The notes beneath the pieces were generated by a model. The model had not been told where the DNA came from. It saw nothing but the letters and a program-made list of their open reading frames with translations, and ran no database searches. From assembly GCA_964247055.1 (NCBI GenBank), contig OZ176058.1:1302001-1366000 (forward strand): a DNA stretch of 64,000 bases, in the 5' to 3' direction. This DNA is from Paragordius varius. Taxonomy: Eukaryota > Animalia > Nematomorpha. Below are positions 15,094 to 55,171 of the stretch, piece by piece (the first letter of the stretch is position 1; each line of letters begins with the position of its first letter). The position numbers were made by a program, and so were the translations under genes.

Positions 15094-15124
<31 letters not shown>

Positions 15125-15426: not shown

Positions 15427-15465
<39 letters not shown>

Positions 15466-17167: not shown

Positions 17168-17206
<39 letters not shown>

Positions 17207-17341
17207 AATGACTTATGTAGTCTTTATAAATATACCATTTCATTTAGTATATAAATATATATACATATACATATATATATTTAATTATAACTTTTTTAAA
17301 GCTATAATAAATATTAATTTTGAATTATAATTATAGAATAT

Positions 17342-17375
<34 letters not shown>

Positions 17376-17665
17376 TAAATTTTCAAAATTTATAAATTTT
17401 TATATAATTTCAAAATTCTTAAAAAATTTTCAAAATTTATAAATTTATTTCAAAAAAGTCATAAGATATCCAATTCAAATTTATTTTATGAATATAGTAT
17501 CTCAATACGTAATTTATATATATATATAATAAATATATATATATATATAAAATTATAAATTTTCATAATTTCTTGTAAAATTTTTATAAAATAAAAAATT
17601 ATTTCAAAAAAGTCATAAGATATCCAGGGTTCTCAAGCAAATCCTTCCAGAACCGTAAAAATCTC
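14870..17665 (-). repeat. Array of stop-codon-end echoes of DBT terminal exon A
   Basis: ttatttcaaaaaagtcat(aagat/gaggt)atccagggttctcaag... fragments at about 14871, 15541, 15719, 15824, 16431, 16818, 17447 and 17600, separated by (TA)n-rich modules. Confidence 0.9.
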
Positions 17666-18117: not shown

Positions 18118-18303
18118 TTATTTCAAAAAAGTCAAAAGATATCCAGGGTTCTCAAGCAATTCCTTCCAGAACTGTAAAAATCTAGCAGCTGTTGCGCCAT
18201 CTATAATTCTGTGATCAGCGCTTAAACTAACATACAACAGCGAGTGGTGTGAATGGGAATTTAATCCACTGCAGATCATCTGATTTGCATTTTTTTCAAT
18301 GGT
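18118..18303 (-). CDS. DBT: DBT exon 11 (terminal), copy A
   Basis: tag|ACC ATT GAA ... TTG AAA TAA; TIEKNANQM...[10 protein letters not shown]...LLTFLK*. Confidence 0.93.
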
Positions 18304-18364
18304 CTAAATTTATATATATATATATATATATATATTTAAAAATTTTTAATATTACATAATATAC

Positions 18365-18395
<31 letters not shown>

Positions 18396-18526
18396 TTTTC
18401 AATGGTCTATAAAAGATTTAAAATATATAATTTTTTTAAAAAAAGGATTTTTAATATTACATAATATATATATATATATAATATATATTTTAATTTATCA
18501 TTTTTTTCAATGGTCTATAAAACATT

Positions 18527-18571
<45 letters not shown>

Positions 18572-18620
18572 ATATAATTTTTAAAAAATTATTATTAATT
18601 ATAGATAAATACAGTAATAT

Positions 18621-18658
<38 letters not shown>

Positions 18659-18708
18659 AAAATCTTTGAAAATAAGATTTATATAATAATTAAACTAGTA
18701 AAATGGTA

Positions 18709-18746
<38 letters not shown>

Positions 18747-19270
18747 TTTGTAAAAGCATTATTAATAAAAAAGAATTCGGCAACATAAAAATATATATAT
18801 ATTTCAAAATCTTTGAAAATAGATTTGCAATTTACATTAATTAAAATAGCTGATTTATCATTTTTTCGATATTCTAAAATATTTTAAAATTATATATATA
18901 TATATATTATATATAATTTTTTTAAAAATTATTAATAAAAGAAGTATCAATAATGATTATATTTATATATATATATTTATAAAAATAAAACCCAAATTGT
19001 ATCAATTGAAATACTAGTAAAATGGTAATTTATTTAAAAAATTAGCTGTTTTTGATTATCATTTTTTTCAATTGTCTAAAATTATATATATATATAAATA
19101 AAATTCAGACCATTGAAAAAAATGATCAAAAGCCATTTAAATTAATTTCCATTTTATTAGTTTTTCAATCATTTTTGTTTAAATCTTATTTTCAAAGTTT
19201 TTGAAAGATATATATATATAAAATTTGTTAAAAAAAGCATTATTAATAAAAAAAAGAAGAATTTGGCAAC

Positions 19271-19313
<43 letters not shown>

Positions 19314-19399
19314 TTAAAAAACTTTAAAAATAGGTTTGCAATTTACATTTATAATAATAGCTGATTTTGATTATCATTTTTGTCAATGTTCTAAATTAT

Positions 19400-19451
<52 letters not shown>

Positions 19452-19497
19452 TTTTTTTAAAAAAAAGCAATTATTAAAAAATGAATTCGGCAACATT

Positions 19498-19561
<64 letters not shown>

Positions 19562-19605
19562 TATATAATTTAAAAAAAGCATTATTAATAAAAATAAGAA
19601 TTCGG

Positions 19606-19649
<44 letters not shown>

Positions 19650-19806
19650 AGCATTGTTAATAAAAGAAAATTCAATTTAAATTTATATATTTATTAAAAT
19701 AAAAGATCCAAATAATATCAATTGAAATACTATTAAAATGGCAATTTATTATTTAAATAGCTGATTTTGATTTTCATTTTTTTCAGAGGTCTATTATAAA
19801 TTAATT

Positions 19807-19854
<48 letters not shown>

Positions 19855-20061
19855 TTTTTTTCAATGTTCTAAAACATTTAATTTCTAAAAAAAGTATTAT
19901 TAATAAAATAAGAATTCAGCAACATAAAAAATATATATATATTTTTTAAAAATGGAAATTAATTTAAATAGCTTTTGATTTTCATTTTTTTCATGTTCTA
20001 AAATTTAAAATTATATATATAAAATTTGTTAAAAAGAGTATTATTAATAAAAAGAATTCGG

Positions 20062-20097
<36 letters not shown>

Positions 20098-20601
20098 TCA
20101 AAAAACTTTGAAAATAAGTATCAAATATAATTGAAAAACTAATAAAATGGCAATTTATCTGAATAGCTGATTTTTGATTATCATTTTTTTCAAAGGTCTA
20201 TTATATATTAATTAAAATTATATATATATATATATATATATATTTTAAAATAAGCATTATTAATTAAAGATGAGTTGTAAAAAATAGGCATATATCTTTC
20301 AAAAAAATTTGAAAATAAGGTTTATATAATGTTTCAAGTAAATTGGCAATTTATTCTAAGATCAGCTGATTTTGATTATCATTATTTTCAATGGTCTATA
20401 AAACATTCAAAAAAATTGGTTTTCAACATTCTATAATAAAAATTTCCTATATATATATATATATATATATATTGTAAATTTTTTTGAAAAAAAGCATTAT
20501 TATTAAAAAAAGAAAAATTAAATAACATAAAAAATATAAATCTTTTGAAAAACTTTGAAAATTAGTATCAAGTAATGATTGAAAAACTAGTAAAATGGCA
20601 A

Positions 20602-20655
<54 letters not shown>

Positions 20656-23600
20656 TTTTAAAAAAAGTATTATTAATTAAAGATGATAGTTGTAAAAAAT
20701 AGGTATATATATTTCAAAAAAATAAAATAAGGTTAATGTTTCTAGTAAATTGGCAATTTATTCTAAGATCAGCTGATTTTGATTATCATTTTTTCAATAG
20801 TCTATAAAACATTTTAAATTATATAATATATATATATATATATATATATCATTTACAATTCAAATTCACCCTTGAACAATTCCAATTTACCCTAAAAATT
20901 ATTGAGTTTTCGGGCTGCTAATATAACTCATCATTAATTTAAAATAAATTTTTACGATATAGTTTATTATTTTTTATGCATTATATTGAAACAAAATTTC
21001 ATGTTTTAAAAGATTTTAAAATAAAGGTAATTTTAATTTTTAAAAAAAGATATTATTATTTTAGAGTGAATCTAAATTGTTCAAGGGTGAATTTGAACTG
21101 TAAATGGTGTATATATTATATATATATATATATATTTCAAATGAATTAGAAAATAAGAAATAAATATTATATAAAATAAATTTTTTTAAAATAAAATAAA
21201 TTTAAATAAAAAACTTAATATAAATTAAAAATAAATTACCAATATTTTTCCAATAGCTATGATAGCTACCTCAGGCCATAATATTAACGGTTTCGCATGA
21301 ATTCCACCAATCTAAAGGGCACAAAAAAAATCGAAAATATTTTTAAGAATAAAAATATTTAAATTATACGGACAAAACGTAAAAATATAAAGACAAATAT
21401 TTTTATGAATATAAGTAATTTGCTTTCGAAATTGAAATAGAGTTACATATATTAGTAAAACAATCAATTCTATATAATTGTAACTAAAAAGCTTATATAA
21501 GAAAATTAAAGTTTAAAAAAGTATGGTTAGTTTGTCTTTTAGAAAAAAAATATTTAAATTATACGGACAAAACGTAAAAATATAAACACAAATATTATTT
21601 TTTAAGACAAATTTATATTTTTGTAAATAAAATCCTGATTTATTTCAATATAACTCATTGTTTTAAATGGCAAAGTATGAAATATAAATGTAAAATTTTC
21701 AACAATACAATAATGATTTAAAATATAAAACTTGAAATTTAAGGACAAATCTATTTTTTCTAAATAAAATCTTTATTTTTCTGAAAATACAACCATACTT
21801 TTTGAATCTACGTTTATTTCAATATAACTATTCATTATATGTAAATTTTCAAACAATAATGATTTACAGTAAAAAAATATTTAAATTATACGGACACAAT
21901 GTAAAAATATAAAGACAAATATTTTTTTCTAATTAAAATCTTGATTTATTTCAATATAACTAACTCATTGTTTTAAATGACAAAGTGTGAAATAGATATA
22001 TATATATATAAGCTTATAAGAGAAATATTTACAGTAAAAATATAAAGACAAATCTATTTTTTTATAAATAAAATCTAGATTTATAACAATATAACTAAAT
22101 CATTGTTTTAAAATGTTAATTCATTTTAATTTAACTCATTATCTGTAAATTTTCAACAACAGAATAATAATTTAAATCTAAAATTGAAATTTTTCTTTGG
22201 ACAAAAGGAAAAATATAAAGACAAATATTTTTATTTAAAAGACAGCCCCATACTTTTTAAATCATTTATTTCAAGATAACTTACATTGTTTTAAATTGTA
22301 AAATATGAAATAGAAATGTAAAATTTTCAACAATACAATAATGATTTAAAATATAAAAGTTGAAATTTAAGGACAAAATGTAAAAATATAAAGACAATTT
22401 TTTTTTAAAAGACAACCATACTTTTTAAAATGTTTTAATGCATTTCAAGATAACTTACATTGTTTTAAATTGTAAAATATGAAATAGAAATGTATATTTT
22501 CAACAAAACAATAATGATTTAAAATAAAAAAGTTGATATTATACGGACAAAACGTAAAAATATAAAGACAAATATTATTTTTTAACTAAAAGACAACCAA
22601 CATACTTTTTAAAATGTGAATTTATTTCAAAACTCATTGTTTTAAATTTTCAACAACACAATAATGATTTAAAATATAAAAGTTGAAATTTAAGGATAAA
22701 ACGTAAAAATATAAAGACATATCCATATTTTTTCTAAAAAACAACCATACTTTTTAAATCATGAGATTTATTTCAATATAACTCATTGTTTTATATGGCA
22801 AAGTGTGAAATAGATATATATATATATATAATTAATACAATCAATTCCATATTTTATAATTGTACTAAATAGATTTTATAAGAAAAAATTTACAGTAAAA
22901 ATATAAAAATAAATGTATATTATTTCTAAATAAAATCTAGATTTATTTCAATATAACTCATTGTTTTATATGGTAAAGTGTGAATTAGAGATATATTTTA
23001 CTAACAATAATCAATTCTATATTTTATAATTGTGTAATTAAATTATTTATATAGCATAAATTAAGATTTTGAAAAGTATGGTTGTTTTTTAGTAAAAAAA
23101 TATTTGTCTTTATATTTTTACGTTTTGTCCTTAAGTATAATTTTACTGTATCTACTATAGACAAAACGTAAAAATATAAAGACAAATATTTTTTTCTAAA
23201 TAAAATCTTGATTTTTTTTTAAATATTAACTCATTGTTTTAAAATGTTGATTTATTTCAATATAACTCATTGTTTCAAATTTTCAACAACACAATTATTT
23301 ACAGAAGTTAAAATTTAAAATTATACGGACAAAACGTAAAAATATAAAGACAAATATTTTTTTTAAATAAAAGACAACCAACCCCATACTTTTAAAATTT
23401 TGATTTTTTTGAATATAACTCATTGTTAATTTTCAACAACACAATAATGATTTACAGTAAAAAGTTGAAATTATACGGACAAAACGTAAAAATATAAAAT
23501 CAAATTTTTTTTTTCGAAATAAAATCTTAATTTATTTCAATATAACTCATTGTTTAAAATGACAAAGTTTGAAATAGTATATAAATTAACACAATCAATT

Positions 23601-25144
23601 CTATATTTTACAATTGTAATTAAATAGCTTTTATAAGAAAATTTAAGTTAAAAAAAGTATGGTTAGGTTGTCTTTTAGAAAAAAAATATTTAAATTTTAC
23701 GGACAAAACGTAAAATATAAAGACAAATCTAGTTTTTTCTAAATAAAATCGAAATTTATTTCAATATAACTCATTGTTTCAAATGGCAAAGGGTGAAATA
23801 GATATATATATATATATATATATATATAACTAATACAATCAATTCTATATTTTAAAATTGTAAGTAAATAGCTTATATGAGAAAATATAAATTAAATTTA
23901 GAAAAAAAAATTGTCTTTATATTTTTACGTTTTGTCCGTATTATTTCAATTTTTTCTGTGTATTTACCTATTATGGACAAAACGTAAAATTATAAAGACA
24001 AATCTTTTTTTATAAAAGACAACCAACTCACCCATACTTTTTGAAACTTGATTTTTTTAATTATATATATAATTAATTATTTTAAACTGTAAAGTATAAA
24101 ATAGAGTGCATTTTAATGGTTGCTTATTTCAAATTATACCATTTACAATTCAAATTATACCATTTACTATTCAAATTATACCATTTACAGTTCAAATTCA
24201 CCCTCGAACAATTCAAATTCACCCTAAAAATAAATTATGTGTTCTAGGGCAGCTAATATAACTCATCATTAATATAAAATATATTTTTACGAGATAGTTT
24301 ATATTTATTCAGTATTATTATAATAATATAAAACAAAATTTCATTTTATGAAAAATATAAAAAATAAAGCTAATTTTTAATCTTAAAAAACACATAATTA
24401 ATAAATTAGGGTGAATTTGAATTGTTCAAGGGTATATAAATGGTATTTTTAATCAAGTTTAAAGACAATAAATTCGACTAATCAAAATAATTTATAATAT
24501 ATATATATATATAAAATATTTAAAAAATATAAAAAGCATATAAATCAAAATATTTTTAAAATAAAATTAAAGAACAAAAATTCTAAAACTTCCATATTTT
24601 ATATATATTGAATATTTTCCAAAATTCTAAAAAATTATCTCAAAAATAATTTAAGATCCTAAAAAATTAATTATTTATTTGATTATATATAATAATTATA
24701 TACTTTTTAAAATAATTAAGAAAAATTTAATTTTTTAAAAAATCAATTTTATACCGAACCAATGTTTGAAACGGTGAATGTCCCACCCATTAAATCCGCC
24801 ATCTTAGGTCTTCCAATCAGCCGGCTGTCACGTGTTAGCCGTGCCAAGTCACGTGAGATTTGACCAATAGAAAGGCGTTGAACGCCTTTAACATTTGGTA
24901 CCACGAGGCCTAATTCCACATTTTGAGTATCTATAGCTACTCCTATATTATGTTCAGGCTAAAAAAATAAAATAAAAAAAAATTAAAAAAATATTTTTTA
25001 AATTAATTTATTTGAATTAAACTTTTTTTTAATAAATATAATAAAATAAAAATATAAAAAAATTAATTTAATTTTTCGAAAAAAGGGATTTAAGCTTTTA
25101 TATGTTTATAGAGAATAAACATGCATTTGAACTATAATATATCA

Positions 25145-26662: not shown

Positions 26663-28381
26663 ATTAAAATTTTCTAAAAATACCAAATTTTTTATAAAAT
26701 TAAATTAAAAAAATTTAAAAAAAAATATAAAAAAATAATTTAAATTCCAAATATTAAATATATATATATATATATTAAAAAATATTTTACAAAAACCACA
26801 TTTTAATAAAATTAAAAATTATTTAAAAAAAATTAATAAAAAATTAATTAAATACCATATATTCAATAGATTCATTTTCTTCATTAAATCGACTATTTAG
26901 GATTGGGAATTTGCTGAGAGCTATTGAAAGACTCTATGTTTAATTATAAAATAAAAATAATTTTTTTTAAAAAATTATAAATTTAAAATATTTTTTATTT
27001 ATAAAAAATATAATTTTTTATTATATAAAAAATATAATTTTTAATTTTTAAAAATATATCAAGAAATTTGGTTTTTTTATAAAATGTATAATTTTAACAA
27101 TTATAATTTTAAAAATAAATCAATAAATTTAGATTTAAATAGTATAATGTATTTATTTTTTTTATAAAAATTATAATTATTATAAATCAAGAAATTTAAA
27201 AAGTATAATGTATCTATTTTTTTTATAAAAAAATTATAATTTTAAGAAATAAAAAATCAAGAAATTTAGTTTTTTTTTAAAGCATAATGTATGAATTTAA
27301 AAAAAATATAATTTAAAAATATTTTTTATTTTATAAAAAAATATAATTTTAATTTTTAAAAAAGAAATCAGAAATTTGGTTTTTTTAGAGTAAAAAATAA
27401 ACATTTTTTTAGTATATTGATTTATATTTTAAGAAATAAAAAATCAAGATATTTAGTTTTTTTAAAGTGAAAAATAAACATTTTTTTAGTATATTGATTT
27501 AAATATTATATTTTTAAAAATATTTAAAAATTTGGTTTTTTGAAAGTATAATGTATGATTTTTTTTATGAAAAAATTAAAAATTTAGAAATTAATCAAGA
27601 AATTTGGTTTTTTTATAGTAAAAAAATAAACATTTTTCTAGTATATTGATTTATATTTTAAGAAAAAATCAAGAAATTTGGTTTTTTAAAAATATTTTTT
27701 ATGAAAAATTATAATTTTAAAAACAAAAAATTTGTTTTTTAAAGTATATTGTATGAATTTATTTTATAAAAATAATTTTTTAGTATAATGATTTAAATAT
27801 TATATTTTTATAAATAAATCAAGAAATTTAGTTTTTTTATAATATAATATAATTTTTTATAAAAAAAATTTTAATAAAAAAATTTTTTATTTTTTACTCA
27901 AGAAATTAGGTTAAATATAATGTGTGAAATTTATATAAAAAAATTATAATTTTAAAAAATAATTAAAAGATTTGGTTTTTTTTAAATATAATTTAAAAAT
28001 ATTTATTATTTTAAAAAATATAATTTTAATAAATAACAAATCAAGAAATTTGGTTTTTTTAAAGTAAAAAATAAACATTTTTTTAGTATATTGATTTGAA
28101 TTTTAAAAATAAATCAAGAAATTTATTTTTTTTGAAGAAAAAAATATTTTTTATGAAAAATTATAGTTTTAAAAATATATCGAAAAATTTGGTTTTTTTA
28201 AAGTATAGAATTTATTTTACAATAAAAAATTATAATTTTTAGAAATTAACCATTGGTTTTTTTAAAGTAAAAAATAAACATTTTTTTAGTATATTGATTT
28301 AAAAATTATAATTATTAATAAAAATAAATCAAGAGATTTAGTTTTTTTAAAGTATAATGTATGAATTTTTTTTAATAATTT

Positions 28382-28417: not shown

Positions 28418-30433
28418 TTATATACCATTTATAGTACAAATATACCCTTAAACAATTCAAATCACCCTTAAACAATTCAAATCACCCTTAAAAATTCAAA
28501 ATCACCCTTAAACAATTCAAATTCACCCTAAAAATAAATTATGTGTTTTCGAGGAGCTAAAATAACTCATTATTAATAAAGAAATATTTTCTTATGCCGC
28601 ATAGACTATTATATTTTCAGTATTATATTAATTTACCACAAAATTTCCATTTTTAAAAATAAATATAAAAAATATAGGTATTATTTAATGTTAAAAAAAC
28701 TCTAAAAATTATTGTAGAGTGAATTTAAATTGTTCGAGGGTGAATTTGAACTGTAAATGGTATATAAATGGAATAATTTTTTTACATTTTAAACACAAGA
28801 CTGCAAATGAAATTTCTCTAAAATTGTCAATTTTTTCTAAATTTTTGAAAAAAAAATTTTGAATTTTATATAATTTTCAAAAAAAATATTTTATTATTTT
28901 AAACAATAAATTTAAGGATAAATCGATAATTTTATCGCTTAAATCTCATCATCTGTTTTTTTCTAATTTTTTTCTAAATTTTTAAATTAAAATTTTTTTT
29001 GGAATTTTATATAAAATTTTCTCGATTAGTATTAAAAAAAATATTTTATTATTTTAACAAAAATATAAGTATAAATCAAAAATTTTATCGCTTAAATTCA
29101 ATTTTTTCTAAATTTTTAAAAAAAAAATTTGAATTTTATATAAAATTTTCTCGATTAGTATTAGAAAAAAATGTTTTATAATTATTTTATACAAAAATTA
29201 AAGCATAAATAGAAAATTTTATCGACTTAACCCCATTTTTAAACTTGTCTATTTTTTCTAAATTTTTAAGATTGTTTTTAATTTTTCTATAGGATTTTCT
29301 TGAAGAGTTTTAGAATAAATGTTCAAAATTATTTTAAACGAAAAGAAATCATAAATCGAAAATTTTATCGATAAAACTGGATTTTCTTTAAAATTCTCAT
29401 TTTTTTCAAAATTTTTAGAATTCTTTAAATTAATTTTTTTATAGAATTTTCTCGATTATTAGAAAAATAAATCTTTTTTAATGATTTAAATTAAAAATAA
29501 ACCATTATTAATCAAAAATTATATTATTTAAATCCATTTTCAATAATATCTACCTTTATAAAAATGGCATTAAAGTCATTTTTTGATAGCTTTCTGTATT
29601 ATTATTACTGCCATTTAAAAAAATTCTAAAATTTTTAGGTTATGTTTTCATAAAAATTATATTTTTTGAAATTTCCATTCCCTAATTTTTAGAGGGTTTT
29701 CTTCTAAATTTTCCAAAGAATTTTTTTTAAAAAAAACATATTTTCGATAATAATAAACCCCATTTTTTAAGAAAAATAAGCCTTGTTTAGAAAAATTCGT
29801 TGCGATTGTAAAATAATTGTATATTTACTTAAATCAAAACATTACCTACGTTTATAAAAAATGGCATTAAAGTCATTTTTTGATAGCTATTATCTGTCTT
29901 ATTATTGCCATTTTGAAAATTTCCAACATTTTTTGGGTTAAATTCTTTAAAATTTTCAGTTTTTTCAGGATTTTTAAGGTTTTTTCAGAATTTTTAGAAA
30001 CTTTTTCTAAACTTTTGATAGAATTTCCAAAAATTGCTTTCTAAACAAGTATTTACACTTTTTTCAATAATAAACCCATTTTTTTAAAAAAATAACCCTT
30101 GTTTAAAATAATTTCGTTGAAAATAATTGTATATTTAAATCAAACACAACTAACCTTTATAAAAAATGGCATTTAAGTCATTTTTTGATAGCTATTATCT
30201 ATATTATTATTGCCATTTTGAAAATTTCCAAGAATTTTTGGGTTAAATTCTTGAAATTTTTAAGATATATTCTAGAAAATTTCCAGTTTTTTCTAAAATT
30301 TCCAAAAAATTTCCGAAAAATTTCTTTTCTAAACAAATATTTACACATTTTCTCGATAATAAACCCCATTTTTTTAAAAAAATTCACCCTTAAAAAAATA
30401 ACCCTTGTTTATTAAAATATTTGAATTTTTAAT

Positions 30434-30470
<37 letters not shown>

Positions 30471-33400
30471 ACCTTTATAAAAAATGGCATTAAAGTCATT
30501 TTTTGATAGCTATTTTCTATATTATTATTGGCATTTCGAAGATTTTCAACATTTTTTAAGTTATATTCTTTGAAATTTCAGTTTTTCTAATGTTTTAGGA
30601 TTTTTTCCAAATTTTCCAAAGATTTTTTAAAAAATTGTTTTCTAAACAAATATCAACACATTTTTTTGATAATAAACCGAATTTATATTTACTTAAATTA
30701 AAAAACTACCTACCTTTATAAAAAATGGCATTAAAGTCTTTTTGATAGCTATTATTTATATTATTATTGTCATTTTGAAAATTTCCAGCATTTTTTGGGT
30801 TAAATTCTTTAAAATTTCCGGTTTTTTCAGGATTTTTAGGAACTTTTTCTGTATTTTCTAAAAAATTTTCTAGAAAATTCTTTTCTAAACAAATAATTAC
30901 ACATTTCGATAATAAACCCCATTTTTTTAAAAAAATATAACCCTTGTTTAATAAAATATTTAAATTTTTAATCCATATATATATATATATTTTACCTTTA
31001 TAAAAAATGGCATTAAAGTCATTTTTTGATAGCTTTCTGTATTATTTCCAACATATTGAAAATTTTCAACATTTTTTGGGTTAAATTCCTTAAAATTTTC
31101 AGTTTTTTCTGAAGTTTTAAGAACTTTTTCAGTATTCTCTAAACTTTCTAAGGAATTTTCTAGAAAATGGTTTTCTAAGCAAGTATTTGCTTGGCATTTA
31201 AATTGCATAAGGTAGTCTGGACTTATAGCTTCTGTAAGGACAAATTGTGGTATACTTAAACTTTTTGTCATTGATTTTATCATGGCTTTTCGAGCGCCTA
31301 AAAATAAAATTGTTTAATTTTTAAATATTTATTAAATATATTTATTAATTAATTATTTTTTAAATATATATAAAATTTTATTGAAAATTTAATTATTAAT
31401 TCAATTTTAAAAAATTTGATTAATTCAGATTTATAGTATAAGATTTTACATATTTAATTTATGTTTTTATTTTGAAATTTTATTATTTTCTGGTTTTTTA
31501 AAAATTTGCTTAAACTTTTTGTCATTGATTTTATCATGGCTTTTCGGGCGCCTGAAAATAAAAAAATAAAAAAAAGTTTTAATTTATAAAAAAAATATTT
31601 ATTGATATAATATCTATAATATATAATTATTAAATTATATAGATTTTATATATTTAATTAATTTTTAATATTTTATATAATTTTTTTGTCATTGATTTTA
31701 TCTTGGCTTTTCGGGGGCGTTAAAAAAATATTTAATTATTAAAAAAAATTTATTTTTTATAATAAAAATTATTAATTTTTAAATATTAATTTAAAAATTA
31801 TTTAATTTGTTAAAATAAAATATATAATTAAATGTACATAATATTATTAAAAATTTTAAGTGTTAATTAAAATTTAAATTTAATTTTATATTTAATAGTT
31901 TTAAACTATTATTTGTCATTGATTTTATCATGGCTTTTCGGGGGCCTAAAAATATTTTTAGGGAATAAAAAATTAATTTTTTAATAAAATTGTTTTTTTA
32001 AATATTTTATTTTAAAAATTATTTAATAAAAAGTTATATGATTTATATTAAATTTTATTAAAAAAATTGAATTATATAAAAATTTATATATTTAGAAATT
32101 TTATTTAATATAGAAAAATTTAAATATTAATTGAAATCTTTGAAATTAATTTTTGAAATATTTTTTGTCATTAATTTTATCATGGCTTTTCAAGAACCTA
32201 AAAAAAAATTTTTAAAAAAACTTATATTTTTAATAAAATAATTATTTAAATTATATAGAAAATTATATAATAATATAAAAAAAATTTTGAGTATTAATTT
32301 AAACCTTTAAAATTCAATTAATTTTTTAAATATACTTAAACTTTTTGTCATTGATTTTATCATGGCTTTTCGGGCGCCTAAAAAAATTTAAATTATCTAA
32401 ATAAACTGTTTAATAAAATATTTTTTATAAAATATATTTAATGATTTAAATTATATAGAAATTTAAATATTTAATTGAAATTTTATTTTTTTGTAATTTT
32501 TTATTAATATTTTTAAACTTTTTGTCATGATTTTATCATGGCTTTTCGGGGAATTAAAAAATAAAATAAAAATTTTAAATTATTAATAAAAAATAAAATC
32601 TTTTATAAAAATTATTTAATTAATGGAATATTTTTTTAAAAAAAATTATTTTATTTATATTTTTATTGTAAATTATTTTTTATTAACTTTTTATAAATAT
32701 TCTTAAACTTTTTGTCATTGATTTTATCATGGCTTTCGCCTACAAAAAAAGGTAAGTAAAAATATATTTTTAATATATTTAGTTTAAAAAATTATTTAAA
32801 TTTATATTCAGTTTTTAAAATAATTTTTATTGAAAATTTAATTATTAATTCAATTTTAAATAATTTGATTGATATATTTATTTAACTTTTTGTGCCCAAA
32901 AATTTGTTATTGAAAATTGTGTAATAAAATATTAATTTTTTAAATAAAATAATTATTTAAATTTATTTTCAGATTTATATTAAATAAATTATTTTATTTA
33001 TAATCTAAATTATTTTTTTCTAATAATTTTATAAGTATTTTTATTTGTCATTAATTTTACCATGGCTTTTCGGGGGCCTGAAAATAAAAAAATAAAAATT
33101 ATTAAAAAAATTAAGAATATTTTTATTATCAAAATATATGAATATTTAAATTAAATAATTATTTAAATATATTTCAAATATTTTATTTAATAGATATAAA
33201 TTATATATATATTAATTGAAATCTTTGAAATTTAATAATTATTAAAATATTTATTTAAACTTTTTGTCATTGATTTTATCATGGCTTTTCGGGGGCCTAA
33301 AAATATTTTTAGGGAATAAAAAATTAATTTTTTAATAAAATTGTTTTTTTAAATATTTTATTTTAAAAATTATTTAATAAAAAGTTATATGATTTATATT

Positions 33401-36400
33401 ATAAAATTTTATTAAAAAAATTGAATTATATAAAAATTTATATATTTAGAAATTTTATTTAATATAGAAAAATTTAAATATTAATTGAAATCTTTGAAAT
33501 TAATTTTTGAAATATTTTTTGTCATTAATTTTATCATGGCTTTTCAAGAACCTAAAAAAAAATTTTTAAAAAAACTTATATTTTTAATAAAATAATTATT
33601 TAAATTATATAGAAAATTATATAATAATATAAAAAAAATTTTGAGTATTAATTTAAACCTTTAAAATTCAATTAATTTTTTAAATATACTTAAACTTTTT
33701 GTCATTGATTTTATCATGGCTTTTCGGGCGCCTAAAAAAATTTAAATTATCTAAATAAACTGTTTAATAAAATATTTTTTATAAAATATATTTAATGATT
33801 TAAATTATATAGAAATTTAAATATTTAATTGAAATTTTATTTTTTTGTAATTTTTTATTAATATTTTTAAACTTTTTGTCATGATTTTATCATGGCTTTT
33901 CGGGGAATTAAAAAATAAAATAAAAATTTTAAATTATTAATAAAAAATAAAATCTTTTATAAAAATTATTTAATTAATGGAATATTTTTTTAAAAAAAAT
34001 TATTTTATTTATATTTTTATTGTAAATTATTTTTTATTAACTTTTTATAAATATTCTTAAACTTTTTGTCATTGATTTTATCATGGCTTTCGCCTACAAA
34101 AAAAGGTAAGTAAAAATATATTTTTAATATATTTAGTTTAAAAAATTATTTAAATTTATATTCAGTTTTTAAAATAATTTTTATTGAAAATTTAATTATT
34201 AATTCAATTTTAAATAATTTGATTGATATATTTATTTAACTTTTTGTGCCCAAAAATTTGTTATTGAAAATTGTGTAATAAAATATTAATTTTTTAAATA
34301 AAATAATTATTTAAATTTATTTTCAGATTTATATTAAATAAATTATTTTATTTATAATCTAAATTATTTTTTTCTAATAATTTTATAAGTATTTTTATTT
34401 GTCATTAATTTTACCATGGCTTTTCGGGGGCCTGAAAATAAAAAAATAAAAATTATTAAAAAAATTAAGAATATTTTTATTATCAAAATATATGAATATT
34501 TAAATTAAATAATTATTTAAATATATTTCAAATATTTTATTTAATAGATATAAATTATATATATATTAATTGAAATCTTTGAAATTTAATAATTATTAAA
34601 ATATTTATTTAAACTTTTTGTCATTGATTTTATCATGGCTTTTCGGGGGCCTAAAAATATTTTTAGGGAATAAAAAATTAATTTTTTAATAAAATTGTTT
34701 TTTTAAATATTTTATTTTAAAAATTATTTAATAAAAAGTTATATGATTTATATTATAAAATTTTATTAAAAAAATTGAATTATATAAAAATTTATATATT
34801 TAGAAATTTTATTTAATATAGAAAAATTTAAATATTAATTGAAATCTTTGAAATTAATTTTTGAAATATTTTTTGTCATTAATTTTATCATGGCTTTTCA
34901 AGAACCTAAAAAAAAATTTTTAAAAAAACTTATATTTTTAATAAAATAATTATTTAAATTATATAGAAAATTATATAATAATATAAAAAAAATTTTGAGT
35001 ATTAATTTAAACCTTTAAAATTCAATTAATTTTTTAAATATACTTAAACTTTTTGTCATTGATTTTATCATGGCTTTTCGGGCGCCTAAAAAAATTTAAA
35101 TTATCTAAATAAACTGTTTAATAAAATATTTTTTATAAAATATATTTAATGATTTAAATTATATAGAAATTTAAATATTTAATTGAAATTTTATTTTTTT
35201 GTAATTTTTTATTAATATTTTTAAACTTTTTGTCATGATTTTATCATGGCTTTTCGGGGAATTAAAAAATAAAATAAAAATTTTAAATTATTAATAAAAA
35301 ATAAAATCTTTTATAAAAATTATTTAATTAATGGAATATTTTTTTAAAAAAAATTATTTTATTTATATTTTTATTGTAAATTATTTTTTATTAACTTTTT
35401 ATAAATATTCTTAAACTTTTTGTCATTGATTTTATCATGGCTTTCGCCTACAAAAAAAGGTAAGTAAAAATATATTTTTAATATATTTAGTTTAAAAAAT
35501 TATTTAAATTTATATTCAGTTTTTAAAATAATTTTTATTGAAAATTTAATTATTAATTCAATTTTAAATAATTTGATTGATATATTTATTTAACTTTTTG
35601 TGCCCAAAAATTTGTTATTGAAAATTGTGTAATAAAATATTAATTTTTTAAATAAAATAATTATTTAAATTTATTTTCAGATTTATATTAAATAAATTAT
35701 TTTATTTATAATCTAAATTATTTTTTTCTAATAATTTTATAAGTATTTTTATTTGTCATTAATTTTACCATGGCTTTTCGGGGGCCTGAAAATAAAAAAA
35801 TAAAAATTATTAAAAAAATTAAGAATATTTTTATTATCAAAATATATGAATATTTAAATTAAATAATTATTTAAATATATTTCAAATATTTTATTTAATA
35901 GATATAAATTATATATATATTAATTGAAATCTTTGAAATTTAATAATTATTAAAATATTTATTTAAACTTTTTGTCATTGATTTTATCATGGCTTTTCGG
36001 GCGCCTAAAATATTTTTTAAAAAAATAAAAATTTTTAATAAAAAATAAATTTTTTTATATAAATTATTTAATTAATGGAATATTATAAAAAAAATTTATT
36101 TTATATATATTTAATTAATATCTTTGAAATTTAATAATTTTAAAATATTTATTTTTTTGTCCTTAATTTTATCATGGCTTTTCGGGGGCCTAAAATATTT
36201 TTTTAAAATTATTTAAAAAAAAATTAAAAATATTGTTTAATAAAATAATTATTTAAAAAATATTTTTAAAAAAAATTTATTAATTTAATTATTAATTGAA
36301 TTTTAAAAAATTTGATTGATATATTTATTTAATAAATTTGTTATTGAAAATTGTGTAATAAAATATTAATTTTTTAAATAAAATTAGTCGATAAATTAAG

Positions 36401-39400
36401 TTTATTCTCAGATTAATATTATAAAAATTATTTTATTTATATTCTAAATTTAATTTTATTTTTTATTAATTAAAATATTTTTGAACTTTTTGTCATTGAT
36501 TTTATCATGGCTTTTCGAGCGCCTAAAAAAATTAAAAAAAGTTTTAATTAAAAAAAAAAATTTATAAATTATTTAATTAATGGATATCTTTTTAAAAAAA
36601 TTTATTTTATATATATTTAATTGAAAGCTTTGAAATTTAATATTTTTTTAAATATTTTTAAACTTTGTCATTGATTTTATCATGGCTTTTCGGGGGCCTA
36701 AAAATATTTTTAGGGAATAAAAAAAATTATCAAAAAAAATATAAGTTTAATTTAAATTTATTTAACATATATAAATTATATATATATTTATATATTTAGT
36801 TTTTTTTTAATTTTTTATAAATATTTTTAAACTTTTTGTCATCGATTTTATCATGGCTTTTCAAGAGCCTAAAAATATAAAAAATAAAATAAAAATTAAT
36901 TTTATAAAATATTTTGTTTGAAAATTGTGTAATAAAATTTTGATATTTTACATATTTAATTGAAATTTTATTTTTTATTTTTTCATAAATATTTTTGTCA
37001 TTGATTTTATCATGGCTTTTCATGGGCCTAAAAAATTTTTAGGGAATAAAATAATTAATAAAAAAAATTTCAAATAAATTATTTAAAATTTATATTCAGA
37101 TTTATATTAAAACAATTTTCATTAAAATATTAATATACCCATTCTAATTTAAAAAATTAATAAATTTTTTATAAATTTTATCATGGCTTTTCGGGGCCCT
37201 AAAAAAATTTTAGGGAATAAAAAAATTAAAATTATTAAAAAATTTATTTAAATTTATATTCAGTTTTTAAAATTATTTTTATTAAATATATTTTTGGATT
37301 TAAATATTCAGAAAATTATATAAAATTAATATAAAAAATTAAGTATTAATTTAAATCTTTAATTTTTTTTTATTTTTGTCATTGTTTTATCATGGCTTTT
37401 CGGGGGCTTAAGAAAAATAAAATTATTGAAAATATATTTTTTTCATAAAAATTAATAATTTTTGAAATATTAAATAAAATTGTTTAATATATAATCTAAA
37501 TTTAGTTTTAATTATTTTTTACATATAAATTTAAAATTATTAAGTAAATATAAAAAAAATTTAAAATTATCCAAAAAATATATAAATTTAACAAATAAAA
37601 TTTTTTAATGATAAAAATTAATTAATTTTAAATATTTTTTAAATAAAATATTAATATAAAATTTATATTAAAAAAATTTAAGTAATAATTTAAACCTTTA
37701 AAATTAAATTTTTTTTTTAATTATAATTTATAAAATATTAATTAAAATTATATCAGAGCTTCCTGGGGCGTGTAAAAAAGTGGAAAAAAAATATTTATTA
37801 ATTTTATCCTAATATGCCAAATTTAAACATTTTTTCTATAAATATTTAAATATAAAATTTATATAATTCTATAATTATATATATATATTTAAATATATAA
37901 TTTATATAAATTTATATATATATATATATATACATATTACAATTTAAATACTAAATTCAATTTAATTTCACCCTAAAAATAAATTAAGTGTTTTCGGGCA
38001 GCTAATATAACTTATTATTAATAAGAAATATATTTTTACTACAATATTTATGATTTTTTTCAGAATTATATTAATTTTTAAATAGATTTTCATATTTAAA
38101 AAAATTAAAAAAAAATTAAGGTAATTTTAAATCTTAAAAAACACATTATTTATTTTAGGGTTAATTTGAATTGTTCAAGGGTGAATTTGAACTGTAAATG
38201 GTATATGAAATTTTTATATAATTTTTTTACTATGCATTAGAAAAAATTTTTTAATATATTTATACATTTATATTTAAGGTTAAATCAAACTTTTTAATAT
38301 ATATATATATATAAAATTATTATAAATATTTTATATATTGATTATGGAAAAATTAAAATTTTTTTTAAAATACTAAATTTTATAATTTAATTTTTTTTAA
38401 TTTTAAAAAATATTACCTGTTAATTTTTCGATTCTAACTTGTTTATTATTTTTATTATTATTGTTTTCAGATTGGATTGATATTGATGAATCTAAAAATA
38501 AAAAATATTAAAGTAAAAATATTAAAATATATATGAAAAAATTAATTATAATAAAAGGATTTAAATTTTATTTATTTAAAAATATTAAAATATATTTATA
38601 AAGTATATATATATATATATAATATATTTAGTCAAGTGATTTTTAAAATGCAATTATTATATAATTTATAATTATAAAAAAAATATTATTTAAATATATA
38701 TATATATATATATATATACAAAAAATTTAAAATAAATCCAAATTTATATATTAGAAAAAAATAAAAAAATTTATTATATAAAAATAAAATTTTTTTAGAA
38801 ATATGTTAAATATTATAAAAAAATAATTTATAGAAAAAAATTTAAAAATAAATAAATACTTTAAAATAAAATGAAAAAAATTATATATAAAAAAAATTAT
38901 TAAAAAAAAGTAAAAAAACGAAAAATGTAAAACCTTAAATTTTAAAAGTATTAAATTTTTTAAGTAAATATAATTATTATATAGTATTTATAAATTTGTA
39001 AAATAATTTTTAAAAATTAAAAAAAAACAAATTTAAAATTTTTTAAATAAATACCAAATTTTTTATCTAGATGGGCCAATTTTAATACATCATTCATTTC
39101 TATACGGCCATCCACACCACTGGGATTTTCAATGTTATTTAAATCAATCTTGATAAAAAAATAAATAAAAAAAATAAAAATTATTTTAAATATTTAATAT
39201 AAATATATATATTTATATATATATATATATAATAATTATTAAATTAAAATCAAATTCTAAATAAAACTATAAGTCCAAAAATAATTCAAAAAGTTTAAAA
39301 TTTTTCATCTTAAAATATACCTAAAATATTAAAAATTCATATATTCATAACATATTAAATTATATATTGTTATAAAAATAAATAAAGCAATCTATTAATT

Positions 39401-42400
39401 AAGAACATTTAGATAAAAAATCATAAATCCATAAAATAAAAATATGCGAAATCATTTAAAAATCATTTAAAAAATTATAATAATTAAAAAATATGCAAAA
39501 TCATTTAAAAATATTTTGATAAATTAAAAAAAACCCAAAATTACATATTTTAAAAAAAATATAAATAAAATTTTAATAATTAAATTTGTTTTTTTTGCAT
39601 TAATATAAAAATAAATTAACCCCTAAAGTTTGAGCTAATTTACGGACCAAAGGGATGGCTTTGATAGAATTATCAGCTTTTTTGCCTTCATTCACCCAAT
39701 CACCTGATTGAGAATTATTCAATTTTAATTCTTGCTCCCTTTTTGGGGTTTTATTATTATTAATATCATCGGTTAGATTCGATTTTTCTAAATATATATA
39801 ATATAAAAATTATAAGATATTAACTATTATGGACAATCCGAATTATAAAAATATATTTTTTTAAAAATAACCCAAACTAAAACTATTATGTATATATATA
39901 TTAAGCAAATTTTCTTTTCAACAAAAATATCTTTGATTTTACCTGTATAAAGCGAAATACAATTGAATGTATACTTATTTATTATAAAAAAAAATTTTTT
40001 TGACAACAATCGTGATAATCGGATCTAATTTTAAAATAGGAAACTTAACTGCAGCAAATTTACAATCAACTTTTTTGTTATCATAAAAGATTTAATTAAA
40101 AGTTATCGAAAAAAAAAATTGTTTTAAAACCCAAATTAAATTTGTTTTATTACTGCAATTATAAATCAGCAAAAGTTAAATGTATTATTGGGTGTATTTT
40201 CAATTACCGCTAGTAATCTTTGTCAAACGTAAATATAAAATTAAAATATAAACTACATAAAAATTAAAGTATAAAGCAAAAATATTTAATGAGATAAACT
40301 AAAAAAACATGTGTTTTAGCTATGAAAGACTGAAAATTAAAAATTTATACATTTTTTTGTTTATTAAAAATTTTAGACAAATCACCTGATGTCGTTTCCA
40401 CCGGCAACGCAGTGTCAGCTGTTTTCGCGTCAGCTGATTTGATACCATCATCGTCTGCTATCACTTCAATGTCAATCAGTGGTTGGCCAACTAGGATGGT
40501 GTCTTCTGATTGGCCATACAAGCGAGTCACGTGCCCATCATATCGGCTGCTTATGGTCACGCTCGCTTTATCACTTTGAACTTCACACACGGGGTCAAAT
40601 TGTTTTATGACGTCACCAGGTTTTATAAACCTGTTTTTTTACGAAAAATTTATTTGAAATAAATTTTGTGTTAAAAGTTTATAATATATCGCTCAAGAAT
40701 TTGAAAGCTAGCATATGCTGGTGAAATAACGACCTGATGATGAATAATCTATAATTTATAAATTATCGAAAAAACTGTTATGGAAAACAGCATTATGTGC
40801 TCATTAAAAATAATCATCAGGAAAAATTCTTAAAACCATCAAGAATTCAATTAAAATTTATTCTTAATCTATATAAACATAACCGTCTGGTAAAAGCTTT
40901 AAATACCTAAAAACTTTTTATGTAACGAAAAATCATTAAATGTTTAATATTTGTTTGTTTATTAGCTTTTTGTATTAGTTTATAACTTTGAACTTCACAC
41001 TCGGGGGGGTCAAATTGTTTTATGACGTCACCGGGTTTTATAAACCTGTTTTTTCACACGTAATTTATTAAAATTTATTTCAATTATAAAATTTAAATTG
41101 ATAAAAAAATTTATATGTTAAATAAATGCTTAATATAAATCGTCTATAGAGTTATTCAATAAATCCTCGATCAATATGTTTGTTTTTATCAAATTTCATT
41201 CAAGTTAAAATATGGTTTTTTAATTTTTATTTGTTTTTTCATCAAAAAAAATCACTTTGAACTTCACACACGGGGTCAAATTGTTTGATGACGTCACCGG
41301 GTTTTATAAACCTATTTTTTCAAACGCAAAAAAAAAATTTTTTTTTCAAAGTTTATTTCAATTATAAAATTTAAAATAATAAGAAAAATTTTATATGTTT
41401 AATAAATGCTTAATATAAATCGTCTAAAGTTAATTCAATAAATCCTTGATCGATATGTTGGTTTTTATCAAATTTCATACAAGTTAAAAAATGGTGTTTT
41501 AATTTTTATTTGTTTTTTCATCAAAAAAAATCACTTTGAACTTCACACACGGGGTCAAATTGTTTTATGACGTCACCGGGTTTTATAAACCTGTTTTTTT
41601 ACGAAAATTTGCATGTGAAATAAATTTTGTCTTTTTCTTTATTAAAGTTAATAATCTATATTTTTATTATATATATTTATATATATATATATATATATAC
41701 CATTTACAGTTCAAATTCACCATTGAACAATTCAAATTCACCTTCGAACAATTCAAATTCACCCTAAAAATAAATTATGTATTTTTGAACTATTATAACT
41801 CATACAGTTTATTATTTTTTCAGTATTATTTTAATTTGAAACAAAATTTTTATTTTTGAAAAAAATATATAATATAGGTGATTTTCAATCTCAAAAAACA
41901 TATATTTTATTTGAGGGTGAATTAAATTGTTCAAGAGTGAACTTGAATTGTTCAAGGGTGAATTTGAATTGTTTAAGGGTGAAATTGAATTGTAAATGGT
42001 ATATATTTATAAAAATGGAAAGTGGTCGCAGCTTTGTGATCTGTTTGTTTCCGGAAAACCGGTAGATCCATTCAAATTCAAATTATTTAAATATGTCGAA
42101 AAAAAATCGAATCAATAATGAATGATCCGACAATAGCTTCGCGTCCTTTTTTTGAATTAGGTCCACAGTTTGGGCCCACCCAAAAAACGCGTTTTTTTAA
42201 AAAAAAGTCTACAAAAATCGTGTCTTTGAGACAATTTTCCTGAAAACGTGTTGGATCATTTTCGATTTCAAATTTGATTTTTTTACTTCTTTTCAATTGT
42301 GCCGAATAATTTACAAATAAATTATTGAAAACCCATTATGGAGAGCAGCATATGTGCTTATTTAAAACAACCATCAGGAAAATTCAATAAACCATCAGGA

Positions 42401-45348
42401 ATTCAATTAACATTGAATCTTAATCAATAAAAATAAATAACCGTCTGATAAAAGCTTTTAATACCTAAAAACTTTTCATGCAAAAAAAATTCATTAAATG
42501 TTTAATATTTTTGTTAATATTGTCAACGAGAACGAATATTTTATGTTAAAATAATAATTTGTATTCTCGTAAAATATATTAAATTCAAAATATTTTTTAA
42601 ATTTTGTTTTAATTAATCTTATTATTATTTTCCTTTGTATCAGTTAATCCATTGAAAACGATACTCTCATGTATAGAAAATTTTGGATATAGTTTAAATT
42701 TAATAAATTTTAAGAGAATACAAATTATATAAAGTTTAATCTTTTTTTTTAGCTTTTTTATATTAAATTTCTTCAATTGTTTTATGACGTCACCGAGTTT
42801 TATAAACCTGTTGGTTTATGAAAAAAAAAATTATTTACTATCAGCAAAAGACACCTTTAATGAACCCTTAAAAATCGATGAAAAAATAATTATACAGAAA
42901 ATAATTTTATGATAAAACAGTCTTTAAACTCAATTAAATGCCTAAATTTTTGTTGTTTTTAAAAGATTCACAATTTTCGAAATCTATATTGAGTAATTCA
43001 TAAAAATGGAAAATTGTTTTATCCCGTCACACCAGAGTTTATAAACTGTGTTTTTTTTTTCATTTTAAAAAAAATTAATAAAATCGACATGAAAAAGCAT
43101 AACCGACCGCCTGTAAAATCATTGTTTGTTTAATAAACCGTAAAAGTAATTATTGTTTTAACATTTTTATAATGAAATTTTTAAATTTTTTAAAAAAAAT
43201 AATACTAACCTCTATAAAATGAGATTTTAAGATTTTTAAAAAGCAATTATTGTTTAACCATTTCTTTATGGAGATTTTTAGATTTTAAAATAAAACTAAA
43301 ACTAACCATTTCTTTATGGAGATTTTAAGATTTTTTTAAAAAAAGTACCATTTCTTTAATGAGATTTTTAAGTTTTTTTAAAAAGTAATTATTGTTTAAC
43401 CACATCTTTAATGAGATTTTAAGATTTTTTTAATAAAAAAATAAAATTAACCTTTATACACGGAGTCAAATAGTATGGCATCCATATAATTTTATAAAAA
43501 GAATTAAAAAATAAATAGATGGCATTTTTATTTTTATGTATATATAATAGATAAATATTTATAAAAATTAATACTGATTTTATTTTAATATTGTAATTAC
43601 TTTAATAAATTACATTTAAAAGTTGTTTCACAAGTATATTAATAAATACACATACATATATATATTTTTATGTACATACATGTCCTTTTTCGTTACACAT
43701 ATATGAGAGATATACAGTAATTCATAGGAATTAATACTGTAAATTCTATTTAAAATCAAAAATTTTTTTAAATAAAAGCCTTTAATTTAAAATAAATAGA
43801 TTTCAAACTGTGTTTCACGTTTAAATGAAAAAACAATTGTAGAAAACTATCACAAAATTTTTGCAGTTTAATATTTTTAGCTTTTTTTGCAAAATGCGCT
43901 TTTTTAAAATAATGATGACGTCGTTTATAAACCCTTATAAAAAACTAACTTTTTTTTCAAAAAAAATTTGTAATTTATTCAATCTATGTGATTAGAGTTA
44001 GTGAATTAATACAATGTATATATAGTAAAAATTCGAATTATACGGACAAAACGTAAATATATAAAGACAAAATTTTTTACTTTTTTTTAGAATAATAATA
44101 TCCTTTATTTTATCAAAAATTTATTTATTTTTTTTCGTTAAATGGGTGGGTATAAATATTTGGTAAAGAATGGAAAAAACAAGAGCTCTATATGGTAATT
44201 CTTAAACTTTTTGATGAATATGATATTGTTAATACCATAGAGCTCTTGTTTTAACCATTCTTTACCAAATATTTATACCCACCCATTTAACGAAAAAAAA
44301 ATAAATTTTTGATAAAGTAAAGGATACATAACTGAAAACTTATGGTATTCTTAAACTTTTTTGATAAATATGATAGATATTGTTAATACCATAAAGCTCT
44401 TGTTTTAACCATTCTTTACCAAAAATTTATACCCACCCATTTAACGAAAAAAAAATAAATTTTTGATAAAATAAAGGATACATGACTGTATAAAAAAAAT
44501 TTTTTTTCTAAAAATTACCCAACAAAATATTACTTTAGGGTTGTTTTGGAAAAAAACCAATTTGGATATACTTTAATATACAATAAAAGTATTTATAATA
44601 CAGTTCTTTTGAGATTCAATAAATTATTGCCAGAATACATATAAAGCAATGAGAAATATAATTAAGGTTTATAATTGTTTTGTCATCGTTTTAGATTGCT
44701 AATAGCCAACATTAATGCTCTTTATATTGTATAATTAAACACTAGTAATGCTTTTTTTGCTTTTTAGTTTGCTTGAATTTTAACAAAAAATTCACAATTA
44801 TTTTTATTAATAAAATAAGTAATAAATGAAATTATACGTAAAAACAAAAATATTTTTACAAAAATAACTTTGTATTCACTAAATTTTTATTTTTTTAAAG
44901 AACTAATAATAATACTTATCGTTTTGGGTTGAAAAAAAATAGTGAGGATGGGAAATATATATTGATATTTCAATTTTAGAATTTTTAAATTTCATATATA
45001 GTTTAAATAAAAAAATCATAATATGAAATAGAAATGTTATTCTTTATTAAAAATAATTTTTATCTTTTAATTTTAAGTTTTTGTCATTATATGTTATCAA
45101 TTTTTTTCCTGTCTTTCAAAAATTTTAACATTTCTAAAAATGTTTTAAATTAACTAATTAATTTTATACAAAGTACTAAATTTAACACACTAAAATAAAC
45201 TTATAAACTTTCAAAATTTCAATAAAATAAAAAATAAAAGCTCAAAAAATTAAAAAAAAAAATTTACCATTCTTTTATGACAACTTCACGTATGCCTTCA
45301 CCAATGTCTGAAAGTTTAAAGGGAATGATTTTATTGAGTAATACTAAA

Positions 45349-54202: not shown

Positions 54203-54236
<34 letters not shown>

Positions 54237-54747: not shown

Positions 54748-54778
<31 letters not shown>

Positions 54779-55132: not shown

Positions 55133-55171
<39 letters not shown>

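Follow-up and report, generated by a model that had tools for sequence, protein, structure and literature searches.

How does an intron come to be filled with copies of the edge of its own neighbouring exon, and how could splicing cope with them? This question is raised by a 64,000-nt stretch of the genome of the hairworm Paragordius varius (Nematomorpha; GenBank assembly GCA_964247055.1, contig OZ176058.1, positions 1,302,001 to 1,366,000 of the forward strand), hereafter the window, in whose own numbering all positions are given. On its minus strand lies a gene for a DBT-type 2-oxoacid dehydrogenase E2 acyltransferase, whose intron 6 is largely made up of repeated copies of the acceptor and first nucleotides of exon 7; similar truncated copies of exon edges (here called echoes) accompany several other exon borders. 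We consider it very probable that these echoes are intronic tandem-repeat arrays, ranging from minisatellites to a higher-order repeat, which were seeded by local tandem duplication across an exon border.

Judged from its sequence, the host gene belongs to the 2-oxoacid dehydrogenase E2 class, DBT type, with its domains and the annotation of its nearest relative in agreement. The exons carry the Pfam domains Biotin_lipoyl (PF00364), E3_binding (PF02817, weak) and 2-oxoacid_dh (PF00198). Among 1.84 billion representative proteins the exon 9 peptide had a single clearly best match, which a second search and a cluster look-up identified as the lipoamide acyltransferase component of branched-chain alpha-keto acid dehydrogenase from Gordionus sp. 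m RMFG-2023, also a hairworm. This Gordionus DBT protein is 58-86% identical to the window's exons, exon by exon, and its own next relatives in a follow-up search were at most 48% identical to it; the top matches of the exon 3 peptide were 62-67% identical. Mapping by tblastn with the Gordionus protein placed all exons of the gene as follows:

45267-45332, minus strand, exon 2
40351-40630, minus strand, exon 3
39621-39787, minus strand, exon 4
39055-39148, minus strand, exon 5
38417-38491, minus strand, exon 6
30996-31297, minus strand, exon 7 (302 nt; source of both acceptor-side and donor-side echo arrays)
26856-26933, minus strand, exon 8
24755-24958, minus strand, exon 9
21240-21311, minus strand, exon 10
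18118-18303, minus strand, exon 11, the last exon

The window is strongly A/T-rich, with 6-21% GC in introns, ~38-45% in conserved exons and lower values in low-complexity exons. The largest set of echoes is found in intron 6:

31298-38416, minus strand, intron 6 (7119 bp, 11.2% GC)
31509 to 37407, minus strand, exon 7 acceptor array (28 units at 159-333-bp spacing, ~16 of them distinct)
32050 to 36001, minus strand, perfect higher-order repeat (1354 bp, 2.92 copies, zero mismatches, seven exon-edge units per copy)

A BLAST comparison of exon 7 with the window located its first 23-47 nt at 28 further places, all on the same strand and all within the array. Each unit combines a T-rich tract, in most cases an AG, and the beginning of exon 7; the AG is retained in 23 of the 28 copies and lost in five. 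A 28-nt core (GAAAAGCC...GACAAA) occurs 24 times at ≤3 mismatches, against no occurrence in 100 dinucleotide shuffles. The copy at 36522 matches the real exon 7 junction perfectly over 39 nt and with one mismatch over 45 nt. Altogether the array occupies ~86% of intron 6, its copy closest to the real junction lying 254 bp away, and Tandem Repeats Finder (TRF) resolved periods of 159-185 bp in addition to the 1354-bp higher-order repeat. The preliminary description of this DNA, made from the letters alone, had given intron 6 exactly this interval and had reported about 28 acceptor-edge copies, most with an intact AG and some nearly identical to the real junction, and all of this was reproduced. 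The count nevertheless needs a qualification, since 14 of the 28 copies lie in the later copies of the perfect 1354-bp repeat and are exact duplicates, which leaves ~16 distinct units.

The 1354-bp repeat represents either a very recent expansion or a mis-assembly, and its 100% identity means that the count of 28 could be wrong. That the arrays themselves, or their copy number at large, are artefacts of a mis-assembled repetitive A/T-rich region is nonetheless very improbable: substitutions, indels and differences in length (159-333 bp) set the ~16 distinct units apart, a variety that mis-assembly does not create, and the same architecture recurs, with differing unit sequences, at a further eight exon borders spread over two genes. 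Echoes at these borders were sought with 50-nt edge probes, mid-exon probes and alignments. Among the borders concerned are those of a neighbouring gene and of a second set of exons 9-11 of the host gene (exons 9b, 10b and 11b):

40979 to 42812, minus strand, four exon 3 acceptor copies (ends 41054, 41320, 41600 and 42812), upstream; first 33-61 nt; TRF period 279
29551 to 30862, minus strand, five exon 7 donor copies, downstream; last 50-190 nt of exon 7 plus GT
18391 to 20398, minus strand, seven same-strand exon 11 acceptor copies in intron 10, upstream; plus one inverted copy
14870 to 17664, minus strand, six exon 11 3'-end copies, downstream of the last exon; last 16-66 nt (25-63 nt by gapped BLAST)
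4166 to 9829, minus strand, second exon 9-11 set (exon 9b 9626-9829, exon 10b 7614-7685, exon 11b 4166-4357)
5695 to 7331, minus strand, nine exon 10b donor copies, downstream; last 7-20 exon nt plus GT plus intron start
4474 to 5375, minus strand, four exon 11b acceptor copies, upstream
3578 to 3686, minus strand, one exon 11b 3'-end copy, downstream; last ~106 nt including the TAA stop
~52.8-54.4 kb, plus strand, RAB5IF/EMC6-family gene (PF07019), last exon starting at 54279
53909 to 54325, plus strand, RAB5IF last-exon acceptor array, TRF period 170; the final unit is the real acceptor

Several of these arrays are visibly continuous with the exon that they echo. The two upstream echoes of the last RAB5IF exon, starting at ~53937 and ~54107, stand in 170-bp register with the real junction; a tandem array at 18342-18538 adjoins exon 11; and the exon 3 copy ending at 41600 has ~45 nt of intronic flank in common with the real exon 3 junction. 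All five donor copies of exon 7 (five matches to this edge against none expected) keep the GT and contain frameshifts or stops, and the exon 10b donor copy at 7303-7331 measures 29 nt in all. The 3'-end copies of exon 11 keep the TAA stop in five of six cases, the copy at 14870 having TGA.

Within the window, edge probes found no echoes of exons 2, 4, 5, 6, 8 and 9. For exon 9, no edge copies were detected with 22-23-mers at ≤3 mismatches, and only the whole-exon paralogue was found; the donor edge of exon 10 likewise has no copies, the echoes being confined to its paralogue, exon 10b. The preliminary description had listed exons 3, 7, 9, 10 and 11 together with RAB5IF as flanked by echoes, which therefore stands for exons 3, 7 and 11 and for RAB5IF, fails for exon 9, and applies to exon 10 only in the form of exon 10b. 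Its statement that the three short DBT introns (563, 472 and 563 bp) are free of copies was correct.

The position of the copies relative to their exons is highly regular. Acceptor-side copies lie upstream, and donor-side and stop-codon-side copies lie downstream, on the same strand as the exon; all of the ~70 copies, in nine independent arrays, fall on the predicted side, with one inverted (P = 0.002 when only arrays are counted), while mid-exon probes returned no copies in the window. The sole exception in orientation is a 19-nt inverted exon 11 acceptor copy at 19106-19124 on the plus strand, which faces a direct copy at 19060-19078 on the minus strand. The polarity that had been expected from tandem duplication, with acceptor copies upstream and donor copies downstream, thus holds at all borders, and agrees with an origin of the copies by local tandem duplication. 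The idea that echoing is specific to splice junctions, on the other hand, had to be given up: copies of the last exon's stop-codon end occur as well, six after exon 11 and one after exon 11b. What matters is therefore the boundary between DNA under constraint and DNA free of it, and not the splice junction as such.

The same regularity makes it extremely unlikely that exon pieces were scattered by transposon- or RNA-mediated capture, whether of the Helitron or Pack-MULE style or through reverse-transcribed splicing intermediates. Mobile elements are certainly at hand, as the window holds an open reading frame for a Ty3/Gypsy-type pol protein, and the DBT introns hold a family resembling miniature inverted-repeat transposable elements (MITEs), with inverted 21-bp-repeat ends. 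However, the echoes are strictly local and periodic, run head-to-tail on the strand of their exon and keep to the predicted side; they never derive from exon interiors or exon-exon junctions, and none occur elsewhere in the window. The MITE-like family, in contrast, is dispersed and arranged in inverted pairs. Dispersal, occurrence in both orientations and terminal repeats were not found as features of the echoes, target-site duplications not having been specifically searched for. Within exons, the breakpoints seem to be located frequently in patches rich in A/T (nt 34-47 of exon 7, AAAAAGTTTAAGTATA; exon 11 at AGATTTTTA), which would fit microhomology or slippage.

If local tandem duplication seeded the arrays, the relationships among units bear on how they grew. 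The acceptor copies of exon 7 show no gradient of divergence with distance from the exon, and the flank of the nearest copy differs from the intronic flank of the real junction. Every copy in the exon 3 array reads CCGG where the real exon has CTGG, and a block of differences from the real exon is common to all but one of the five donor copies of exon 7. Older unit-to-unit flank homology is preserved in intron 6, for example between the units at 33077 and 36522, with the perfect 1354-bp repeat as the newest layer. Significant flank homology was found in 29 of 120 unit pairs, and common flank motifs are visible; for the majority of A/T-rich flanks, shuffled sequence gives alignments just as good. 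Global flank alignment is uninformative here, as shuffled A/T-rich sequence also aligns at 82%, and ungapped comparison of cores is misleading on account of 1-3-nt indels; local alignments were used instead. Taken together, this indicates that each border was seeded once or a few times and that amplification from copy to copy followed. Serial budding from the real junction was rejected as the main mode of growth, given the lack of a divergence gradient, the unshared flank of the nearest copy and the higher-order repeat. Relative to exon 7 the copies carry 0-6 mismatches in 36-50 nt; they are young, so that special conservation is not needed to explain such identity, and we make no claim of selection.

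The DBT gene of Gordionus served for comparison. The intron before the peptide ARKAMIKSM has the same codon position and phase in both species (G/GT in Gordionus, G/GC in the window, the slash marking the junction), and the lengths of the introns from 6 onwards compare as follows:

intron 6, 335 bp in Gordionus, 7119 bp in the window
intron 7, 616 bp in Gordionus, 4062 bp in the window
intron 8, 952 bp in Gordionus, 1897 bp in the window
intron 9, 330 bp in Gordionus, 3443 bp in the window
intron 10, 567 bp in Gordionus, 2936 bp in the window

In total, introns 6-10 amount to ~2.8 kb in Gordionus versus 19.5 kb in the window. Edge copies were found at none of nine exons of the Gordionus DBT locus, and long-period arrays number one per 33 kb there versus ~13 per 64 kb in the window. 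Since the Gordionus introns are short and without edge copies, both the echoes and the inflation are specific to the lineage of the window, at least at the DBT gene. The two genes also differ in exon 7 itself, which measures 302 nt here and 156 nt in Gordionus owing to ~48 additional amino acids of low complexity, inserted in the 3' half of the exon (30996-31170). This insert contains internal repeats (TRF 31092-31159, period 30), and tandem duplication has apparently affected even coding sequence at this place in exon 7, where the protein tolerates it.

Array turnover can be judged from exons 9-11, which are present twice in tandem (4166-9829 and 18118-24958), ~14-15 kb apart. Reading frames have stayed open and splice sites intact in either set; the paralogues show one in-frame 6-nt indel, a synonymous divergence (dS) of 0.166 and a ratio of non-synonymous to synonymous divergence (dN/dS) of 0.19. 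The block, which is absent from the Gordionus DBT locus, goes back to a tandem segmental duplication of ~14-15 kb, and the two sets could be alternative 3' exon sets or the result of a recent partial duplication. As exon 10b has nine donor copies and exon 10 has none, array turnover has been fast relative to a dS of 0.17. One peculiarity of the paralogues is that the 3'-end echoes of exon 11 (14870-17664) bear the exon 11b-type ATG (Met) and not the TTG (Leu) of exon 11 itself (18118-18153); either exon 11 changed after copying, or gene conversion took place.

For splicing, the arrays pose a marked problem of recognition. A leave-one-out weight matrix was built from 13 other acceptors (positions -15 to -1); by this crude measure the true acceptor of exon 7 comes 26th among the 138 AG sites in intron 6, and 17 decoys score above it. 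Local signals thus do not single out the true acceptor, in keeping with the earlier proposal that splicing must choose one true site among many decoys. Strict exon definition or clean-up by nonsense-mediated decay (NMD), which that proposal took to follow, may be how the decoys are dealt with. Junctions in the exon 7 array read AG/GCG or AG/GCC, except in a single subtype (32197, 33551 and 34905) with AG/GTTCTT, a poor donor. Recursive splice sites, or ratchet points, were considered and, on sequence, discarded, as no AG/GTRAGT-like regenerated donor is present at the exon 7 copies. That each echo has one splice site only would be a simple reason for cross-exon definition to ignore it, and would also account for the lack of whole-exon copies within introns.

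Taken in order, the events that we envisage are these. A duplication of ~150-300 bp would have arisen by slippage, unequal sister-chromatid exchange or microhomology-mediated repair, with one breakpoint in the A/T-rich intron and the other usually in an A/T-rich patch of the exon, such as nt 34-47 of exon 7. Only products retaining one intact exon would survive, so that the truncated half-exon ends up on the unconstrained side, which is the polarity observed; duplications lying wholly within an exon would be purged, save in the tolerant loop of exon 7. The half-exon unit together with its intronic part was then amplified, copy to copy, into the arrays and higher-order repeats now seen, and this amplification inflated the intron, as the comparison of 335 bp in Gordionus with 7119 bp here shows. 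The copies may be tolerated since each has one of the exon's two splice sites, with the result that cross-exon pairing fails, and any mis-spliced product would probably meet stop codons and be degraded.

Four points weigh against this account, at least in its simplest form. First, the exon-derived core is 94% identical among distinct units, with few indels, whereas flanks reach at most 85% in the best local block, with many indels; this could reflect gene conversion from the exon, or constraint, and slippage-prone A/T flanks combined with poor alignability could equally yield the contrast. Second, the copy at 36522 alone has the real exon's GCGCTCG start, with differing flanks, which suggests some gene conversion. 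Third, random seeding would predict ~8-16% of long-period arrays at exon edges, and the observed share is 5 of 13, or 9 of 17; this apparent over-representation may be a detection bias towards units with a complex core. Fourth, the duplication mechanism itself was not observed, and the evidence comes from one 64-kb window of this genome.

In a more far-reaching reading, satellite-like arrays of this lineage would nucleate preferentially at exon borders, junction-seeded amplification would be the main way in which its introns grow, cores would be kept exon-like by gene conversion, and dozens of consensus-strength decoys would routinely be ignored by splicing. We regard this as rather doubtful. 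Possible causes of such nucleation are repair or replication trouble where intron of ~10% GC meets exon of ~40% GC, or complex exon sequence that anchors unequal exchange.

The same observations could also be read as signs that the half-exon cores are actively maintained, be it as sinks or enhancers for splicing factors, as stepping stones for removal of long A/T-rich introns, or as regulated starts of poison exons. Such a function would be in line with the better conservation of cores than of unit flanks, with decoy acceptors that score equal to or above the real one, with the apparent enrichment of exon-edge arrays, and with the AG/GT junction of the three units of one subtype. It is contradicted by the echoing of the last exon's stop-codon end, where a role in splicing is absent, by the loss of AG in five copies and indels in several, and by the frameshifts in donor-side copies. 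Moreover, 335 bp of intron free of copies suffice for the Gordionus orthologue, the arrays differ between the exon 9-11 paralogues, which implies fast turnover, and most junctions are AG/GC and not the motif of a recursive splice site. We therefore judge active maintenance to be unlikely, and retain seeding by local tandem duplication with subsequent amplification as the preferred explanation.

Several known systems resemble the arrays in part. Giant introns filled with satellite DNA, such as those of the Y-linked fertility genes of Drosophila, are likewise dominated in length by tandem repeats, but these are simple satellites unrelated to the neighbouring exon, whereas the unit in the window derives from an exon border and has a splice site of consensus strength. 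Tandem exon duplication, including clusters of mutually exclusive exons, involves whole exons with both splice sites that can be spliced in; it has in common with the echoes that duplication is local and within a gene, and the exon 9-11 block may be a case of it, but the echo units themselves are half-exons with one splice site.

The nearest concept is that of OVERMEGA, mini- or megasatellites overlapping exon-intron junctions that were described in vertebrates as direct tandem repeats with units of ≥90 bp and ≥3 copies, and interpreted as recent tandem amplifications whose intronic part later decays (bioRxiv 10.1101/2021.07.19.452908). Likenesses include the head-to-tail arrangement in one orientation (28 exon 7 acceptor copies on the minus strand at 159-333-bp spacing) and the number of units (28 in intron 6 and 4-9 at most other borders, with only three at RAB5IF including the real junction and a single copy at the exon 11b end). 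The real border may also stand in register with the array (RAB5IF, 54279), adjoin it (exon 11) or have its flank in common with a copy (exon 3). In other respects the window departs from OVERMEGA: its units hold only a truncated exon edge and so add no extra coding repeats, its arrays reach 28 units plus a higher-order repeat and make up most of the intron length, and many borders of one gene are affected, the stop-codon end included.

Intron gain by tandem genomic duplication (the Rogers model; potato RNA-dependent RNA polymerase (RdRp) case, PMC4974935) is an accepted route to new introns, and resembles the present case in that a local tandem duplication includes splice signals of which the spliceosome uses only one duplicated site. 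Here, however, an existing intron was lengthened and none was created. For intron 6 the Rogers model was rejected, as the intron pre-exists in Gordionus with the same position and phase. In the literature on Nematomorpha genomes and junction-spanning repeats we found no description of the echo pattern in hairworms. As far as sequence can tell, the echo arrays are a striking new case of junction-overlapping mini- or megasatellites; the mechanism looks ordinary, and what is unusual is the density of arrays and the share of intron length that they explain.

TRF showed tandem arrays that lack an exonic part, of 77-450-bp period (most 134-226), to be frequent in the introns and flanks that hold the echoes:

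8583-8994, non-exonic array
22144-23524, non-exonic array
27346-27691, non-exonic array
28968-29455, non-exonic array
44191-44488, non-exonic array
56483-59166, non-exonic array

The last of these lies downstream of the RAB5IF-family gene and is a 217/448-bp satellite of ~10 units, in which nothing recognisably derives from an exon. Since non-exonic arrays and the 14-15-kb block are duplicated too, local tandem duplication acts at every scale in the window. In addition, (TA)n microsatellites lie directly against the acceptors of exons 11 and 11b (18304-18330 and 4358-4400, respectively) and right after the donors of exons 7 and 9b (30950-30995 and 9575-9625). The 21-bp repeat (ACAATTCAAATTCACCCTTGA) occurs 36 times against none expected, often as inverted pairs 200-225 bp apart, and looks like a MITE-like family inside the DBT introns, plus a longer array after RAB5IF. 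Its sites are:

12081-12385, 21-bp-repeat site
20855-21101, 21-bp-repeat site
24187-24425, 21-bp-repeat site
28491-28754, 21-bp-repeat site
41706-41993, 21-bp-repeat site
54575-55489, 21-bp-repeat site

The pol frame (73-2481, plus strand) is intact over 802 amino acids, comprising reverse transcriptase, RNase H and integrase of Ty3/Gypsy type with an Asn-rich tail, and runs off the start of the window. Stop-free segments of 189 amino acids (11252-11818, plus strand) and 136 amino acids (63104-63511, minus strand) were also noted, the former between the two exon 9-11 blocks and the latter Gly/Arg/Tyr-rich, with an RGG-like tail and 52% GC. Pfam searches of the stop-free segments at 46-49 kb, 61-62.5 kb, 11.2-11.8 kb and 63104-63511 returned no families, and an Rfam scan of the whole window returned no RNA family.

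For annotation, the finding carries a warning, as the decoys and the duplicated exon 9-11 block will tempt gene predictors. For genome biology, intron 6 has been lengthened ~20-fold relative to the hairworm relative, and if the pattern is genome-wide, half-exon copies would be built-in tracers showing that local tandem duplication, and not transposon insertion, lengthens introns in this lineage. Finally, intron 6 constitutes a natural experiment on splice-site choice, since its one true acceptor is accompanied by more than 20 copies whose local signals match or surpass its own; in this relative of the nematodes, exon definition could be set against rules of proximity or scanning.

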